Assembly (NCBI GenBank): GCA_964019335.1
Contig: OZ025691.1
Span: forward strand, 310,001 to 374,000
Length of the DNA stretch: 64,000 nt
Reading direction: 5' to 3'
Source of the DNA: Diplonema japonicum
Taxonomy: Eukaryota; Protista; Euglenozoa: Diplonemea
The notes under the pieces are model-generated. The model did no database searches. It had not been told where the DNA came from and saw nothing but the letters and a program-made list of their open reading frames with translations. A program made the position numbers and the translations under genes. Of the stretch, positions 52,727 to 63,015 are shown piece by piece (the stretch's first letter is position 1; every line of letters starts with the position of its first letter).

Positions 52727-53483
52727 CAGTTGGTGTTGACTGTCGTTGTTGTGTAATATTTTGTGTGAGAGTGTCTCGAATGTGTGCAAGAAAGCCTTAC
52801 GCGTTGGTTTTAGAAGCGTGTCAGGTGACGCTGCTCGGCTACCTATTCCTGTTTCTCTCATTTCTTGTTATCAAGTCGATATTTTTTTTATTTTTTCTGC
52901 TTCAGGTGGTAAAGGTTGCCCGAAAGGAGAAGTTAAGCAAAAACGCGATATATTTTTCATATCAATCACTGTGATTAGCAGAATAATGGAACGAAGGTGC
53001 TTAAGGGAGATCCCTACAAATGGCCATTATTATCTCTTCTTTTTTTTTAGTCGGTTTGTTTGCTCGAAAAGAAGACAAACAAATAAAAACCTGATAAAAA
53101 TTTAGTGCATCCAAGAAAGTATGTGGTGTTCCGTCCTTGCACATATTCCTGCCTGAGAATGTCTCTCTAGTGGTGGAACATGCGTGATTTCTTCAATTTC
53201 TTTTAAATACATGACTATGAAACGAAATCCTTTTTTTCTTTCGTTTCACAGCAGCGCTTTTTTGCACGATGTCTTTTTTTCTTTGTCTTCTTCTTCTTTT
53301 CTGTTCTGTTTCTTCTTCCCGAGGGGTGTCGACGGCCAACCACGACAAATCAACCAAGACTCGCGAACAATTGCGCCAAAAAAAAAAAAAGAAAAAAGAA
53401 ATTTAGGATCCATATTCTCCATATTTTCTAACTTACAAAAGCACTCTTTCCCCCCGCCTTGTTTTCTTTACCTTACGTAACAC

Positions 53484-53524
<41 letters not shown>

Positions 53525-53577
53525 AATGTTGCTGAATAATATTTTCCCCTTTCGATTCCGTTCCCCCCTTATTTTTT

Positions 53578-53712
53578 TGGTCGGGAACGGTACTCTCCAA
53601 ACCTGCTGGGACGCTAGTAGGAGCCATTGAAGGGTGCCTTTCGCCTGAAGAGGACAGCACCTGGAGGAGTTGCGAGATATGTCCGAAACTGAGAGATGCC
53701 TAGTTTTGACCA
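53578..53712 (+). ncRNA. Candidate type III hammerhead ribozyme
   Basis: CTGAAGA (53645-53651), stem II GGACA/TGTCC, GAAAC (53685-53689) and an upstream AGTA (53616-53619). Stem III is extended; stem I is weak. Confidence 0.5.
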
Positions 53713-53826
53713 TACCCCCCTGCGGCTCTCGCGCGGAGTTTGCATGTGACATCATCTTTTTTCGCCGTTTCTTCTACATAACCATCACAAGCAGAATGAA
53801 GCGGTAAAAGAAAAGGTTACGTAAAG

Positions 53827-54560: not shown

Positions 54561-55693
54561 ATGGAAGAGCAAGTACTCGACACACTCGACGTCCTCAGGA
54601 ACACAGTCGAGTACAAGGCAGCATGGGAGGTGGAGTTGTGGAAGAAGCGGGAGCAAACGCAGTACGCCGCCAAACTGGAAGGAGAAGCAAAGAAAGCCGT
54701 ATCGCAAAGGCTGGACATACTAAAGGAGAGGGAAAGAGAGCTATCTGACGAATACAAAATGAAGATGCGCAGCGCCACCAAAACAGAAGACAAGGCACTT
54801 CGAGAACAGGCTGAAACACGTGAAAAGCGACAACTCTTAAGCGAGGTAGAGAAGGCATTGCGTAGGAGGAAAGAGGAACTGGAGAGGGAATACTCTCTGC
54901 GGGCCAAGGAGTGGGAAGACAAGATACGGCGAAACAAAGAAGAGGCCGCACACAAAATATCAATGGAGCAAATGAAACTAAAACAGCAGTCCGCCACCAT
55001 TGACGACTTGCGCAAAAGGCTTCACGACGTTGAAACGAAACACAAGGAACTATGGAACACCGTGAGCAAGTCTAAGCAGATGGAGCTGGACCGACACCCT
55101 GCAAGCTTTATCAAGGAAGCCGTTGCAGAGGTCGAGGACAAACACCGGCAGGTTACCGAGGCCCGACGTGGGGAATGGCTGGCAAGGGAACAATCCATGC
55201 AAAAGAAAATTTCCGGCCTGACCACCGTGAACACCCGGCTCCGTGAGCTCTTAAACAACAGCTCCATAGAGATTCTCGGGCTGAAGGAGAAGCTCAGCAA
55301 GCTCACCGCGGACACCACTCTTTTGACCGCTGAAACAATCACCCTTACCAAAACAAAGCAGAGTAGTACAGAACCAGTGCCACCAGTGCAGTCGGTGGAC
55401 AATTCCGTACACATAGAAATCCGAGAGGCAGTTAAATGGCTCCCACCCGTTCTTGCGGACGTGCGGCCTGCTTGCTTATCAGAATCAGACAGACAGATCA
55501 TATTAGAAGTATGTTTGCGAGATATAAAAAAAGAACTATCACCTAATAGATATCCCGGCTTGGCAAGGAGAAGGAACGACTGTTGTCCACAGGGTGCTAC
55601 ACGGAAGCAGACTCTGTACTGGTGTCGCTGACGCAACAGCAGCAGAAGATGATACATCAGTTGATGACGGTGAAGATGGGCAGAGTGGCTTAG
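54561..55693 (+). CDS. CEP120-like coiled-coil protein; exons 54561-55508, 55550-55693
   Basis: RNTVEYKAAWEVELWK and the spliced tail ISRLGKEKERLLSTGCYTEADSVLVSL resemble the start and end of the CEP120 coiled-coil region. Confidence 0.7.
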
Positions 55694-55788: not shown

Positions 55789-58700
55789 ATGGAAGTCGGT
55801 GAAATTTGGAGCGAATGGCAGAAGAAAACGATTAGGGTGCATTATGTTGGGGTGCGGATGGGGAGCTGGGCGACGATAACAGACGCGTTGGGACATGCGT
55901 CGGACCATGATCGGGTGGAGGTCTCTGCTGGGACGTACAACGAAGCCTTGGTGATCAACAAGGAGCTGGAACTCGTCAGCGTGGAGGGCGAAACACCAGA
56001 CGTGGTCAACCGCGGAACATGCCTCACCATCATGGCTCCGAGCGCTTACATAAGCGGCTTCGACTTCACGCAAAACGACAAGATGAAGGAGGTCCCCGCG
56101 CTCAACGTCGCAGAAGGCTCACCGGTTCTTGTCAACTGCAAGTTTCCCTCCATGTTAATATGCCGCGGCCTACCCCACGTGCAGTCGTGCGAAATCACAA
56201 ATTCAGTATTAACATCTGGCATCCGTATCCGCGGCACCGCCGGTGGGACCTTCATTAAAAACACCATTCACGACCATGAGTTCTGGTGTGTTGATATAAA
56301 CTGCACCGGGGAGATAAAGTTCGAGAACAACACAATGTGCTGCTTGGAGACATCTTACCGAGCATCGAAGAAGGGACGCGGTGTCGTGCTGATCGGGTCT
56401 TCGATCTCCAAAGACACGAGCGTTGTGTTCCGCCAGAATAAAATCTCCGACCCGCCACCGAAAGAAAAGTCCGAGCACATGGAGCCCTCGCAAAAATCCC
56501 GCACTCGTGCGGCAGTTGTTCTACACAGCGACGCCATCAACGTGTGTTTCACAGACAACGATTTCACGTCGTGCGAAACAGGTGTCATTGTCAAGGGAAG
56601 CACACCTATCTTCCAGGATAACCTGTTTTCAAAGCAGCTTTACTACGGGATTCTTATCGAATCCGGCACACCCGTCATTGAGAATAACAGGTTTTCAGAA
56701 TGCCGTACAGCTGGTATCCTCGCTTCCTCTGAAGAATCCGAACCAGCAATACAGTCGAATCTCTTTATCGGGAACGCAATAGGCGGCCACGGGATAATCG
56801 TGGAGAACGGGGCAATACCGCTCTTCCACAAGAATACCCTTCAACGCTTACAAAAGGTCGCCATCAAGGTCGTTCAGTCCTCAGGGACCTTTACCGAAAA
56901 CGAGATCCACGATAATTTAGGACCTGCTGTGTTGGTGATGGGGTACTTATCGTGTCCGTTTTTTAAGGGAAACCAAATCCACCATGGAGAGATGCAGGGC
57001 ATTGTAGTGGTTCAAAACGCATCTGGTGTCTTCGTGGGAAACACGATTTACAGCATGTTGATAGGTATCGCTTTGGTGGGGTGCTCGAACCCTTTGTTCG
57101 AAAAGAACCACGTCTTCGATTCAAGGAAAGAAGGGATGCTTATCGCTGAAGGATCCCTCGGCATTGTTGAAGACAATAAAATCGAATTCTGCATCCTCGG
57201 CATCCTGGTGACAAGAGCATCATGCCCCACGGTGAAGAGGAATAAAATAACTTGTTGTATCGATCCAGCATTACAAATTTCAGAGGGTTCGACGGGGTCG
57301 TATTCTAACAATTATATCTATGAGAATAAATCTTTAGGCATACTTGTCGACTCTGCCTCAGACCCGCTGGTGACAGGGAATAAAATAGAATGTAACGATG
57401 GGTGTGGAGTTTACGTGTCGAACGCGTTGGGGTGTTTTGTCGACAATTATTTCGAGGCAAACCACATCAGTTTCAGGGTTTCCGACAATGCAGACCCAAC
57501 AGTTCGCAAGAACCTGTTTTCAAAGTGCGAGGCCCCGCAGAGCGTTGTGATAGAATCCGAGGCAAAAGGTTTTTTCGAGAAAAACAGCACGGAGCTCTGC
57601 TTCAACGGGGTGATCGTGAAGGGGAAGGGAACCGACCCGATGCTCGTGAAGTGCGATTTCAGGATGACGGACGAGGTCGGCATCACATTCATGGATAATG
57701 CAATGGGAACAGCTTCAGGGTGCCGTTTTAGAAATCTTGCAACGGGCTGCAAAATAGTTTCCGGGTCCACTCCGAACATTGTGTCATCATCCTTCGAGGG
57801 CGCTCGACACGGATTCATCGTGACAGGTCTCGACACATTCCCCACAATCTCCGAGAACCACATCACAAGCGCCGCGACCGCCGGTATCACGTGCTCCGAC
57901 CACTCGTCGGCTAGAATCTCTCGAAACATTATTGAATGTTGCGAGCTAGCCATCCACCTCTCCCAAACCACTAAGCAGGGCACGATCACACGAAACACAT
58001 TAAGCAACAATACAACAGGCGTTCTAGACACCGATCTGTCCGCGATGTCCTTCATCGACAACACCATTACCGGATCGTCAGAAGCTGCAGTTTCCATTAA
58101 AGGGGGTGGGTGTACTTACCTTGAAAACACAATCTGCGCCTCGTCTGTCGGGGTTGTGATATCAGGGAGAAGCGGTCCCGGTGTGTTTAGAAACAACACA
58201 ATCCAAGACAACATCTGGGGGATCAAAGCCTGCTGCGACCACGAACGGCAAGGCTTGATGCAGTTTATCGGAAACGATGTGATAGACAGCTCTCGAGCCA
58301 ACGTCGCCGTGGAAGTCCAAGGCCACCTCATCATGAGGCAAAACAACATCAAGAACGCCTCCTTGGGCGTGCTGTGCAGAACAGGAGGCTGCGGGTTATT
58401 TGAAGACAACACGATATCCAACCACTCCGTCGCGAACATCAGAGTTGTATCTGAAGCAAATCCTGTTTTCTTAAACAATTCAATCGAATACTCCAAGCTA
58501 GGTGTCGAAGTCACTGAAGGAGGACGCGGAGTTTTCGAGGCATGCCGTTTACGCGAAAATGACATTCACTTCTACGTCTTCAAAGGCGGCGATCCAACCG
58601 TTGTGGACTGCGACCTGACACGGAGTGAGGGCAACGGCCTCGTCGTCAGAAAAGGCGGCCTCGGAACGTACAAGAAAAACCGGCTTTCCCACAACAAAAA

Positions 58701-61700
58701 ATCAGGGTTGGAGATCGAACAAGGAAGCTCCCCCACGGTGGTGGGGAACGAGATATGCGACAATGAAGAGCACGGAGTTGTTTTTCGCGAGGAATCAGTG
58801 GGGCTGCTGGCAGAAAACAACATATCGGGCAACAAGAAGTCCGGTGTGCTCGTCAGCGTGGGAAGCAGGCCGCAGATCGAACGCAACACGATACAAAACA
58901 ACACATACGGACTGGAGGTAGATGAGGTTGGGTACTGCGATTGCGTGGGAAACACCTTCACGGAGAACAAGGAAATCGGCGTTGTCGTGCGTGCAAACTG
59001 CGACCCGATCATCGAAAACAACAAGTTCATAAAAGAGAAGGTAGGCATGTCTCTCCTCGCTCATAGCTCCGGAAGGATGTACAACAACACAATATCCGGC
59101 TGCCTCTGCGGTGTAGAGATCTCTGAAGACGCGGCACCATCTCTTCACGAGAACACCTTCGTCAGCAACACGTTTGGGATCCGCGGGCTCGACCAATGTA
59201 AGGGCTCCGTCACGAAAAACTCGTTTGAAGAGAACACTGTTGGTGCGGAGATTTGGGAAAACGGTGCTCCCACCTTCGAGGGGAACACGTTTTCATCATC
59301 CGGCGGTGAGGGAATCGTCATAAAAGGCGGTTTAGGCACATACAGTGCAAACCATTTCACTGCGATACAATGCGGCATCAGAGTTTCCCAGATAGAAGCG
59401 GAACCGGAGATACAAGCGAACACATTCCACGAAACGTATATCGGGGTGTGCGCAGAGGACGAGGCACGGCCGTTGGTCGAGAAAAATACGTTTCAGTCGA
59501 ACCACCATGCTGGGCTGCTCGTGCGGACGCAGGCAGCCCCGAACATCCAGAAAAACAACTTCTACAATGAGGTCAACGGGCTTCGAATTGAAGACGAAGG
59601 TGCGGGCTTTGCTGAGAACAACGTGTTTGAAAACAACCTTACAGGGTGCCTCATCACGTCGGAATGCACACAACCGTTTGTGCACAACAACAAGTTCGTA
59701 AAGAACAGGGTAGGGCTTGCATCGTCGAAGGGTTCTTGCGGGACGGTGACCTCAAACTACTTTTGCCAGAACGCAGAAGCCGGGATCTTGGTCACGACTG
59801 ACGCCAACGTGCAAGCATCGAAGAACACGTTTTCACACCATGCACTACCGGCCGTTGCGATTGACATTAGAGACCACGGGCGAGGACTCTTCCAAGGCAA
59901 CCTTGTCACTCAGAACGAGGTCGGTCTCCAGATTCAATCCGGTGGTGATTGCCTTGCAACTAATAATCTCTTCTCCGCACAGACGCACGCTGCCGTTGTC
60001 TCACTCTCTGGCGGAAAAGGTACCATCAAGCGTACTGCCTTCCGGGGCAACGCCCTCGATGTGGACGTCACGGACGGCGGGCTCACACTGTTCCGCGAGA
60101 ACGCCTTCAACGCCCCGCACAGCATCACCGTGCGCAACGAGGGTCTCGGCGTCTTCGTGAACAACAGCATCACCGGCCGTGTGGTGATCCACAACCATGG
60201 GAACCCGAAGATCATGGAGAACCACATTCAAGGAGCAGGCATTCTCGTCGAAAAGGGTGGGAGGGGCGAGATCATGAACAACGTGTTTGCGAGACTGCAC
60301 GACAAGACTGCCGCGGGGCTGGAGACACGGAGCGGAGGCGACCCGTACGTGTCAGGGAACACCTTTTGGCAATGCTCAAGGGGGGTCCTGTGCATGGAGG
60401 AAGGACGGGGAGTCTTTGTTGAGAACAAGATTGCGGCGGGCAAGGTAGGGTTTGAGGTCGGGCCTGATGGGAACCCCGTGGTAGACCCGGGGAACACCCT
60501 GGACTACCTCGATAAGGGAATCATAGTCACAGGTACGGGCGCAAGGGGGCAATTCACAGGAAGCTATGTAAGCGGGTGCACGGCAGGTGTTATTGTCGAG
60601 AAGGGCGCGCAGCCCGTATTCAAGGAGATGGATGTCTACGACTCGAGGATCGGTGTGCACCTCTTCGAAGCCGCAGGTCGCTTCGAGCAGTGCTCCATCT
60701 TCGACAACACACTGAACGGCATCGTCGCTGAAGCCGGCAGTGAGACCACGCTCAACGGGAACAAGATCTCATCTGCATTTGAAATAGGTGCTTTTGACAA
60801 GGTGGATGGTTCGAACTGCGTATTAGAAGATAACAAAATTAAGCATCAGTTCAGCCCAGCAAGCTCGAAACGCCCCGGCCGTGTAGAGCGTGGGGAAACC
60901 CGCCGCAAGGTGCCCATTGACGCCAGGAGAGCCATCGCCACGATGGATGGCTACCAAAAAGAACTGTGGGAGCAAGCGGACAAGATCATTAAGGAATCGA
61001 AAGAGTTGTTCAGAAAAAACAGATTGAACTCGGGGGACCTGTCCCCTGATGCGCCAGCTAGCCCAAGGGTGGAAAAACTCAGAGATACTAGCTCGAACAT
61101 CAACCTGCTTCTACAGGCAGCTGAAGAAAACGAGGAAACAGAAGACACGGCACCCGACCAAGAACAGGTTATTGGTACCCCAGTAGCGGTCCCAACGACC
61201 CCCATAGAAGTCACAAGAGCTCGATCCTCGACCCCCACAGAAATCACAACTGCAGTAAAATTGATTTCACCTCGAAGAGTAACAACTGACCATGCGACTT
61301 TGAAGCAAAAGCCGAGTGTTTTAAGATCCAAACAGTCTGCACCCAGCTGTGCTAGGCCCGCACGGAAAAAGTCAAGATCAGCTTCCAGGAAGCCAACCAC
61401 CTCAAAGCACAGCCTCTCTCCTACACAACAGAAGTCTACTGCAACTGCTCCGAAGAGCTTCAGATCGCAAGGGTCGAAGATTGTTAAGAAATCAGTTTCC
61501 GGGAGGCGCCCACTGGCTAAAACCAAGCTGTCTATCGCTACAACGCCACCGAGACATTCCGTTAGCGTTAAGGAAGAAAAAGAGTTTGTTGAACAACCCC
61601 CAACTCCTACAAAGCTCTTCTCCCCTACCGGGTTCTGCCCCGTGCAGCACCTGTCGCACGCCGAAGGGGATGTGGAGACTGCCCCTGAAGAGCCCTCCGT

Positions 61701-63015
61701 GCTGCGTGAAGTATCTGAAATCGTGTTCCCCTCCAGGCCTTCATCGCTAGAGTCGAGCATGCCGTCCCCTGTTTATTTCCCCGGTGCGCAGGAGGTGCTA
61801 GAACACGCAAGCAGCCGAACGAGCAGCTCAACGGATCAAACCTCAACCAAGGAACAATCCCTAAAACCACCATCCCCGCCACTTCTTCCTCCCCCCCGCG
61901 TGGTCAGCGCTGATACTTACTTCTTATACAAAGAGGATAGCAAGGTTATTCCCGAAATAATAGACAGCATCAGCCGTCACGATAAGAAACCTGTACTGAG
62001 ACGCACTGGGCCAAGGGAGAGCCTTGGCGTGGTGAAGGTTGGAAAAGAGTCTGCTAAGGAAGTGGTGAAAACGGAATCGGAGGATGAAGAGTCGCAAGGT
62101 GTTCGTGAGAAGGGGCGCAGCAGCACAGCCACGGTGTCCGGCTCTTCTCGGGAAAGCGAGCCGGAGCTGGAAGCGGAACCGGAGCCGGTGACGCCTCCAG
62201 CGGGTCCAGAACCTCCACCCATAGCTGATATCGCAGTCGCAGTGGCGTCTACGCCTCACTGTGTTGACACGGCGAGACCAGAACGTAGAGTGAGTATTGC
62301 GAATGAGGAGCCCACAGCAACGGATGTCTTTATATCCAGTCAGCCTTCTTCGCCCTTTGACACTCCGTATGAACATTTGTTGAAGGAGACGCCACGTGTG
62401 CCCTGTTCCCCTTGGTCAGCTGACATCTATTCTGGTAGGTCTTTTGCCCCGCAGCCGCCGATTGACGTTGTTCCGAAACAAATTGCGATCCCCACGGTCC
62501 CCCCGTTGCAGGCAGTGGTGGATGCGCAAAACCATCCGTTTCTTCGTCGTGATGAGCTGGCCGCACCTAAGCCGGTCCGGATAAAAGGAAGGAGGAGAAA
62601 TGTGTACAAGAAAACGCTGCTGGAGGTGCAAGGCAACATCCAGCCAAACGATACTGGGGACTGGGTGTGGAAGATTAACAAGGAAAAGGGATCAAATGTG
62701 AAGCCGCGAGTCTCCAGAGTCTGCGCCGTTGCCGAGACTTCCTTATGCCCACAGGTTGCCACTCTTGAAGAGGTTAGCCTCATTGCCAAGCTGCCTCCCG
62801 ACATGCTCCCCCGCATCAGCCCTTCGAGAGACGCGGTCTCCCGCAAATGGAAATCTTCTGAAGGCACTTTTACCTATTCACGACATACATCCCCCAGGGC
62901 TGCCCAGACGCAGATATGGGCTTTGCCAAGCATCTCTCCTGATTACCTCGCCCTCACAGCACCGCATATCTCCCCTGACACTGTCAGGGAGGTTTGTGCG
63001 ATGCGGATATGCTGA
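55789..63015 (+). CDS. Giant right-handed parallel beta-helix (PbH1/CASH/NosD-like) protein with a disordered Ser/Pro-rich C-terminus (2408 aa)
   Basis: TITDAL..A...D.V.V.AGTYNE.L.I.K.L.L cap, followed by dozens of ~23-aa GI.V....P....N.I repeats; intronless. Confidence 0.9.
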   Translation: MEVGEIWSEWQKKTIRVHYVGVRMGSWATITDALGHASDHDRVEVSAGTYNEALVINKELELVSVEGETPDVVNRGTCLTIMAPSAYISGFDFTQNDKMKEVPALNVAEGSPVLVNCKFPSMLICRGLPHVQSCEITNSVLTSGIRIRGTAGGTFIKNTIHDHEFWCVDINCTGEIKFENNTMCCLETSYRASKKGRGVVLIGSSISKDTSVVFRQNKISDPPPKEKSEHMEPSQKSRTRAAVVLHSDAINVCFTDNDFTSCETGVIVKGSTPIFQDNLFSKQLYYGILIESGTPVIENNRFSECRTAGILASSEESEPAIQSNLFIGNAIGGHGIIVENGAIPLFHKNTLQRLQKVAIKVVQSSGTFTENEIHDNLGPAVLVMGYLSCPFFKGNQIHHGEMQGIVVVQNASGVFVGNTIYSMLIGIALVGCSNPLFEKNHVFDSRKEGMLIAEGSLGIVEDNKIEFCILGILVTRASCPTVKRNKITCCIDPALQISEGSTGSYSNNYIYENKSLGILVDSASDPLVTGNKIECNDGCGVYVSNALGCFVDNYFEANHISFRVSDNADPTVRKNLFSKCEAPQSVVIESEAKGFFEKNSTELCFNGVIVKGKGTDPMLVKCDFRMTDEVGITFMDNAMGTASGCRFRNLATGCKIVSGSTPNIVSSSFEGARHGFIVTGLDTFPTISENHITSAATAGITCSDHSSARISRNIIECCELAIHLSQTTKQGTITRNTLSNNTTGVLDTDLSAMSFIDNTITGSSEAAVSIKGGGCTYLENTICASSVGVVISGRSGPGVFRNNTIQDNIWGIKACCDHERQGLMQFIGNDVIDSSRANVAVEVQGHLIMRQNNIKNASLGVLCRTGGCGLFEDNTISNHSVANIRVVSEANPVFLNNSIEYSKLGVEVTEGGRGVFEACRLRENDIHFYVFKGGDPTVVDCDLTRSEGNGLVVRKGGLGTYKKNRLSHNKKSGLEIEQGSSPTVVGNEICDNEEHGVVFREESVGLLAENNISGNKKSGVLVSVGSRPQIERNTIQNNTYGLEVDEVGYCDCVGNTFTENKEIGVVVRANCDPIIENNKFIKEKVGMSLLAHSSGRMYNNTISGCLCGVEISEDAAPSLHENTFVSNTFGIRGLDQCKGSVTKNSFEENTVGAEIWENGAPTFEGNTFSSSGGEGIVIKGGLGTYSANHFTAIQCGIRVSQIEAEPEIQANTFHETYIGVCAEDEARPLVEKNTFQSNHHAGLLVRTQAAPNIQKNNFYNEVNGLRIEDEGAGFAENNVFENNLTGCLITSECTQPFVHNNKFVKNRVGLASSKGSCGTVTSNYFCQNAEAGILVTTDANVQASKNTFSHHALPAVAIDIRDHGRGLFQGNLVTQNEVGLQIQSGGDCLATNNLFSAQTHAAVVSLSGGKGTIKRTAFRGNALDVDVTDGGLTLFRENAFNAPHSITVRNEGLGVFVNNSITGRVVIHNHGNPKIMENHIQGAGILVEKGGRGEIMNNVFARLHDKTAAGLETRSGGDPYVSGNTFWQCSRGVLCMEEGRGVFVENKIAAGKVGFEVGPDGNPVVDPGNTLDYLDKGIIVTGTGARGQFTGSYVSGCTAGVIVEKGAQPVFKEMDVYDSRIGVHLFEAAGRFEQCSIFDNTLNGIVAEAGSETTLNGNKISSAFEIGAFDKVDGSNCVLEDNKIKHQFSPASSKRPGRVERGETRRKVPIDARRAIATMDGYQKELWEQADKIIKESKELFRKNRLNSGDLSPDAPASPRVEKLRDTSSNINLLLQAAEENEETEDTAPDQEQVIGTPVAVPTTPIEVTRARSSTPTEITTAVKLISPRRVTTDHATLKQKPSVLRSKQSAPSCARPARKKSRSASRKPTTSKHSLSPTQQKSTATAPKSFRSQGSKIVKKSVSGRRPLAKTKLSIATTPPRHSVSVKEEKEFVEQPPTPTKLFSPTGFCPVQHLSHAEGDVETAPEEPSVLREVSEIVFPSRPSSLESSMPSPVYFPGAQEVLEHASSRTSSSTDQTSTKEQSLKPPSPPLLPPPRVVSADTYFLYKEDSKVIPEIIDSISRHDKKPVLRRTGPRESLGVVKVGKESAKEVVKTESEDEESQGVREKGRSSTATVSGSSRESEPELEAEPEPVTPPAGPEPPPIADIAVAVASTPHCVDTARPERRVSIANEEPTATDVFISSQPSSPFDTPYEHLLKETPRVPCSPWSADIYSGRSFAPQPPIDVVPKQIAIPTVPPLQAVVDAQNHPFLRRDELAAPKPVRIKGRRRNVYKKTLLEVQGNIQPNDTGDWVWKINKEKGSNVKPRVSRVCAVAETSLCPQVATLEEVSLIAKLPPDMLPRISPSRDAVSRKWKSSEGTFTYSRHTSPRAAQTQIWALPSISPDYLALTAPHISPDTVREVCAMRIC

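Follow-up and report, generated by a model that had tools for sequence, protein, structure and literature searches.

Non-circular permutations of a ribozyme were first reported in 2023, when Eckert, Friedrich, Weinberg and Weinberg (Nucleic Acids Res 2023, PMC10085705) defined the type-CSG hammerhead ribozyme. In this type, the blocks occur in the 5'-to-3' order C (CUGAnGA), S (cleavage site) and G (GAAA); CUGAnGA is flanked directly by stem I (5') and stem II (3'), GAAA by stems II and III, and N-U-H by stems III and I, with no insertions allowed. [quoted passage not shown] Classic type III hammerheads (Rfam RF00008) occur in viroids, plant retrozymes and others. Retrozymes, in which two hammerhead-bearing direct repeats flank a non-coding unit that is excised and circularised, and Penelope-like elements are non-autonomous or mobile elements that carry hammerheads. 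The SINE-like Sm-alpha repeats of schistosomes are short, non-coding, highly repeated retroposons with a classic type I hammerhead inside them. Among Euglenozoa, the SIDER/RIME/NARTc retroposons of trypanosomatids sit, mostly in the sense direction, in the untranslated and intergenic parts of polycistronic units, and their 5' signature has HDV-like activity.

The window analyzed here is a stretch of 64,000 nucleotides of the Diplonema japonicum genome (GCA_964019335.1, contig OZ025691.1, positions 310,001–374,000, forward strand); the genome comprises 62.5 Mb in 132 contigs. The first-pass annotation had proposed that the window contains a type III hammerhead ribozyme, cleaving after the GUA that ends at 53619, in a dispersed, rod-folding repeat resembling a retrozyme or Penelope-like element. 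The sequence features underlying this proposal were confirmed. CTGAAGA was found at 53645–53651, GGACA at 53652–53656 pairing with TGTCC at 53680–53684, GAAAC at 53685–53689, and AGT at 53616–53618 followed by A at 53619, as well as the rod pairings GGTACTCTC with GAGAGATGCC and TGGTCGGGAAC with GTTTTGACCA. The 138-nt stretch folds somewhat better than its shuffles (z = -2.0). The combination of CUGANGA, a 5-bp stem II and GAAA occurs once in the window, while 0.015 occurrences per 64-kb window are expected by chance. The interpretation was supported only in part: a full hammerhead core does sit in a dispersed, rod-folding mobile repeat on the transcribed strand, but the type III wiring, the cut site and the retrozyme or Penelope-like label were not supported.

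The stretch is one copy (53579–53756, + strand) of a dispersed, non-coding, SINE-like retroposon of roughly 200 nt with about 150–250 copies. A BLAST search of the genome gave 41 scored matches out of 248 candidates, pattern searches with three different anchors gave 80, 113 and 137 matches, and a depth ratio of about 170 was obtained in a DNA run. The sequencing runs X1 and X2 hold copies that are 90–97% identical. The alignment of 72 copies showed that the common form is about 197 nt long, from GGTCGGG to ...TTAATTTGAA or ...GACATCATC, and that a rarer form has 62 more bases at the 5' end. The 3' end is constant, whereas the 5' ends form a ladder, which shows that the + strand is the RNA strand of the element. 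T-rich target duplications of 8–11 bp abut both ends of other copies, namely those at the loci labelled L006 (TTTTACAT), L004 (TCTATTTATT) and L022 (TTTTGTTTTG). There is no poly(A) tail on either strand. An open frame of about 62 codons runs through the element, but a 1-nt indel between subfamilies breaks it and rules out a conserved reading frame. An internal duplication was not significant (p = 0.09).

The origin of the element was then examined. No tRNA-like part was found, the similarity to 5S RNA did not exceed that of shuffles (score 24 against 22 +/- 4), and no Rfam match, including rRNA, was obtained; the rDNA of this genome was not compared. Thus, neither an internal Pol III promoter nor a head derived from tRNA, 5S or 7SL was recognized. 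A partner LINE was not found either: at least 150 matches to the reverse-transcriptase domain are present in the genome, many inside uninterrupted frames of 1430–2036 aa (e.g., contig C52, 155000–165000, locus L102), so that several retrotransposon families look recently active, but none of the 20 loci sampled shares sequence with the element. Two places on contig C28 (115408–115442 and 169100–169134) share only the part of the element from GAGAGATACCTAG onward, preceded by a common unrelated sequence (TAGAAG.GTTTGAGAG). A second repeat family may therefore share the same 3' module, and loose ends of contigs at window positions 53718–53719 point the same way. A scan of metagenomes with a 19-mer gave only eight isolated matches of 19–20 nt, the number expected by chance.

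Diplonemids have one-strand polycistronic gene clusters and spliced-leader trans-splicing (PMC10161547). The neighboring 356-aa ORF is 99% identical to a EukProt transcriptome protein and 42% identical to a Diplonema papillatum protein. Contigs of a related organism (run X1) cover the upstream gene to 52886 and resume at 53794 after 22 unmatched letters; transcript contigs also start at about 54560 with 42 unmatched leading letters, as expected for a spliced leader. A 41-nt GT..AG cis-intron at 55509–55549, inside the 356-aa ORF region, is skipped in contigs of three runs (X1, X2 and X7). The element therefore lies on the transcribed strand in the spacer between two cistrons, and the downstream gene and one-strand arrangement pointed out in the first-pass annotation are real. 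In the same spacer, after the lipase-domain gene and 55 nt upstream of the element, an uninterrupted run of about 45 A lies on the + strand (53478–53523), where Logan contigs break. Directly downstream in the same cluster, a 2408-aa ORF (55789–63015) contains 12 right-handed beta-helix repeats (Pfam Beta_helix, NosD). At 28 of 30 loci, the flanking long open frames run the same way as the element, while two loci are ambiguous and none is opposed. The copies lie 37–740 nt after the upstream stop and mostly 58–640 nt before the next ATG, and in some loci they fill most of the spacer. Insertion into strand-biased T-tracts is enough to explain this bias. Upstream of one copy (L006, 320–1304), four evenly spaced weak matches to a C/D-box snoRNA model (SNORD57, 23.5 bits each) may represent a tandem snoRNA cluster.

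The features of the window copy, numbered as in the type-CSG model discussed below, are as follows.
53572–53578 (+): upstream T-run, the T-rich target site and a putative copy of the target-site duplication.
53579–53756 (+): one copy of the retroposon, subfamily A, starting at GGTCGGG and ending at ...GACATCATC; it lacks about 16 nt in its 3' part compared with the family consensus.
53579–53584 (+): outer rod helix, 5' strand, pairing with 53706–53711 in the minimum-energy fold; 89% of cells paired.
53590–53597 (+): inner rod helix, 5' strand, pairing with 53691–53699 with one bulged A; 94.7% of cells paired. Its 3' strand runs directly on from stem III, so the two can stack.
53602–53621 (+): stand-alone hairpin CCUGCUGG/CUAGUAGG, found in the minimum-energy fold and by RNAalifold and containing the GUA taken for the cleavage site in the first-pass annotation; two G.U pairs become A-U in subfamily C, and 96.3% of cells are paired.
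53632–53637 (+): bridging helix, 5' strand (GGGUGC), pairing with 53657–53662 (GCACCU) and tying the far ends of stems I and II together; present in the minimum-energy fold, 98.3% of cells paired, duplex energy -8.5 kcal/mol.
53639–53644 (+): stem I, strand 2.6–2.1 (UUUCGC here, UCUCGC in the consensus), pairing with 53672–53677.
53645–53651 (+): hammerhead core C3–A9 (CUGAAGA); N7 is A, U, C or G among copies.
53652–53656 (+): stem II, strand 10.1–10.5 (GGACA), pairing with 53680–53684.
53668–53671 (+): stem III strand 16.3–16.1 (AGU) plus H17 (U here, C in most copies), with the predicted cut between 53671 and 53672; 96.7% of stem III cells paired.
53672–53677 (+): stem I, strand 1.1–1.6 (GCGAGA).
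53680–53684 (+): stem II, strand 11.5–11.1 (UGUCC).
53685–53690 (+): G12 A13 A14 followed by stem III strand 15.1–15.3 (ACU).
53757–53762 (+): downstream T-run, the second copy of the T-rich target, continuing into the pyrimidine tract ahead of the trans-splice acceptor of the next gene.

In order to evaluate the type III model, the search with the Rfam models Hammerhead_3 and Hammerhead_1, which the first-pass annotation had itself put forward as a check, was carried out, and no copy of the element was found with either model in the whole genome. The Rfam collection, used at gathering and at permissive thresholds, also gave no hammerhead hit on the window, on 701 nt (E<=10), on 93 nt (E<=10) or on 18 other copies carrying CUGAUGA. 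The best sub-threshold match to Hammerhead_1 in the genome (contig C76, 185271–185321, minus strand; 25.5 bits, E 0.016, gathering score 34) is not a copy of this element; its sequence was not examined. Stem I of the type III model is not a continuous helix: the need for a bulge, already admitted in the first-pass annotation, holds for every subfamily (G1.1–C2.1, then 3 bp after a bulged G). Its 5' strands are taken by the hairpin 53602–53609/53614–53621. Constrained folding gave -25 against -47 kcal/mol, i.e., about 21 kcal/mol above the minimum-energy fold, and the bare stems gave -1.6 to -3.4 kcal/mol. The requirements for a retrozyme were not fulfilled either, since each unit has a single ribozyme and no flanking long repeats, no primer-binding site or polypurine tract was seen, and there is no circle-forming arrangement. 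Pairs of copies do lie head to tail about 280–480 nt apart (the L028/L030 region; C12, 106622 and 107098; C28, 301448 and 301734; C27, 419382 and 419665), but they often belong to different subfamilies and are then separate insertions, as insertion into the T-run beside an older copy would give. Such pairs could release a unit-length RNA if both ribozymes cut. An HDV-like mapping of the pseudoknot was rejected by hand, as there is no room for P3/L3 and no P4 or J4/2.

RNAalifold, run unprompted, paired CUCGC just 5' of the core with GCGAG inside the "loop" of stem II. This helix is exactly a hammerhead stem I if the substrate strand is the one inside the loop: G-U-C/U at 53669–53671 is then the cleavage triplet, GCGAGA at 53672–53677 pairs with the six bases before C3, and AGU at 53668–53670 pairs with ACU at 53688–53690, right after GAA. 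The resulting order, core block (53639–53656), site block (53668–53677) and GAAA block (53680–53690), is the one defined as type CSG. Every hammerhead consensus position is present (C3–A9, G12–A14, the A15.1–U16.1 pair and H17), plus the usual G10.1–C11.1, C15.2–G16.2 and GUC. There are no spacer bases at any junction in the window copy, the consensus or subfamily D, and the stems of the window copy are 6, 5 and 3 bp long. In this model, all three stems cross one another, there is no three-way junction, and the order cannot be reached by opening a loop of a type I, II or III hammerhead, although the catalytic core, the stem II position and the expected cleavage chemistry are those of the classic type III.

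CSG-1 was rebuilt from its published oligonucleotides and compared with the element. Both contain a 6-bp helix joining the free sides of stems I and II, a 1-nt spacer, a 6-bp stem I, the core, a 5-bp stem II, the site GUC (GUU in the window copy), a short linker from stem I to stem II and GAAA. The stem sequences are unrelated, the linkers are 5 and 2 nt instead of 3 and 5, and stem III is 3 bp and continues into a long rod, against 5 bp in CSG-1. Unlike Sm-alpha, the element does not carry a type I hammerhead; it belongs to a different host group and its sequence is unrelated. In comparison with SIDER/RIME/NARTc, it carries a different ribozyme class, placed internally and not at the 5' end, and lacks a poly(A) tail. 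In contrast to retrozymes and Penelope-like elements, it has T-rich target duplications of 8–11 bp and LINE-type 5' truncation.

Loss of CTGANGA/GAAA or of the stem pairing in other copies, together with a lack of self-cleavage in Mg2+, had been specified in advance as the outcome that would speak against a ribozyme; the copies were found to keep the core and stem II. On 41 copies, the four helices of the type-CSG model were 96.3% paired, none of 500 shuffles reached the observed pairing or covariation score, and sliding the partners dropped pairing to 18–49%. Differences between subfamilies within the ribozyme fall on N7, on H17 (consensus position 92: C in 46 copies, T in 22, A in 1 and G in none), on a linker and on three pairs that change on both sides, and never on an invariant core base. 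Pair 2.3:1.3 is C-G in 29 copies and U-A in 7, and is U-A in all 32 copies of subfamily D; pair 10.3:11.3 is A-U in 24 copies and U-A in 13; and pair 10.2:11.2 is G-C, becomes A-U in subfamily D and has a G.U intermediate in copy L060. Stem III and the bridge show no compensated pair. The tree of copies was too poorly resolved for a formal test of independent events, the changes trace to only a few subfamily events and two of the changed sites are CpGs, which may be hypermutable, so that the question of whether covariation supports the stems stays undecided. Subfamily D is young (12 of its 32 copies are identical over 64 nt; one copy lies on contig C7, 121032–121095, minus strand) and carries all three changed pairs with an intact core. 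A descriptor requiring at least 5 bp in stem I, 4 in stem II and 3 in stem III gave one hit in the window (C3 53645, H17 53671, G12 53685) and none in 30 Mb of Markov-random sequence. In 292 kb of this genome, it hit only copies of this element, and 29 of 81 sampled copies are intact. The summed helix energies (-18.6 kcal/mol) rival the best nested fold of the same 64 nt (-15.2 kcal/mol).

All these characteristics allow us to assume, with moderate confidence, that the element is a SINE-borne type-CSG hammerhead with a predicted cut after 53671. In this view, the element inserts into T-tracts and so ends up in the sense direction in the spacers of polycistronic clusters; its RNA folds as a rod whose head is the ribozyme, with the bridging helix and a 2-nt linker holding stems I and II side by side. 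The 2'-OH of nucleotide 53671 would attack its 3' phosphate, leaving a 2',3'-cyclic phosphate on 53671 and a 5'-OH on G53672. The sequence and helix anatomy, its conservation and compensatory changes between subfamilies, the mobile-element features and the orientation were established by the analysis, whereas both cleavage and its purpose are inferred; no self-cleavage or core-mutant assay was performed, and the seven public runs consist of assembled contigs, which do not show RNA ends. The likeliest use is processing of element-containing co-transcripts, while an effect on the pre-mRNA spacers of the host is possible but unsupported. Three of 113 copies start exactly at the predicted 3' product (G93 of the consensus) and two more within 2 nt, but 5' truncations are common nearby, for instance four at consensus positions 103–105, so this is only a hint. 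One contig of run X1 joins position 53670 back to 53590, going back 81 nt (depth 13, 35 letters on the shorter side), with the break 1 nt from the predicted cut. We have no explanation for it, and it could be a rearranged copy or a circular or branched RNA product.

The main rival, less likely but possible, is a structured SINE RNA whose crossing helices are real but serve something else, such as recognition by a partner reverse transcriptase, Pol III transcription or RNA stability, with CUGANGA, GAAA and GUC being coincidental and no cleavage taking place. The most conserved stretches (53620–53639 and 53660–53669) lie outside the catalytic core, being linkers that the hammerhead model does not explain, and in the 31 copies found by BLAST the core is not significantly better conserved than random positions (p = 0.11). 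Stem III is short, no Rfam ribozyme family was hit, the type-CSG model was found after the covariation had been seen and is thus partly post hoc, and a ribozyme cutting the element in two has no obvious benefit for a SINE. In a very large scan, a few chance motifs are also expected. However, given real stems I and II, the odds that a CUGANGA, a GAAA and a U-H site sit exactly at their junctions without a spacer are about 1 in 10^6–10^7 by arithmetic from base frequencies. In addition, the descriptor had no hit in random sequence, all five subfamilies keep every invariant base while N7 and H17 vary freely, and the layout matches a ribozyme shown to be active.

The type III reading, with stem III formed by 53616–53618 and 53688–53690 and extended by the rod, and stem I by GGAG with UUC-G-C, is very unlikely. 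Its letters are present, AGU can pair with ACU, and 93% of its cells are paired across copies, but its one variable pair changes only on one side and the partner change lies in stem I of the type-CSG model, while its site is buried in a hairpin with its own supporting changes. It also appears unlikely that the copies, active or not as ribozymes, are a host-exapted processing module kept because they help separate cistrons or set polyadenylation or trans-splice choices. The orientation of the copies, their place in the spacers and the position of the window copy between the upstream 3' end and the acceptor at about 53794 would fit, but the bias follows from insertion into strand-biased T-tracts, as the T-rich duplications show, individual copies decay like neutral DNA, and the window copy lies in a spacer that is discarded anyway. 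A still bolder possibility, likewise improbable, is that the roughly 200 sense-oriented copies are active ribozymes cutting polycistronic pre-mRNAs inside intergenic spacers. A mobile type-CSG hammerhead would then have become part of how this diplonemid separates or times its cistrons, and this would be the first natural setting that explains why this rare strand order exists.

The strand order itself is thus already described, whereas the host and the genetic setting would be new: in the literature searched, no paper other than that of Eckert et al. uses the term type-CSG and none links hammerheads with diplonemids. The analysis shows that searches with Rfam-type models miss such rewired ribozymes altogether. 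If the fold cleaves, this family would give type CSG a host, namely a diplonemid, which belongs to a very abundant group of marine protists, a genetic setting in a recently active retroposon, and natural compensatory changes. It would also add Euglenozoa to the lineages with hammerhead-bearing mobile elements and place self-cleaving RNAs inside polycistronic transcription units.
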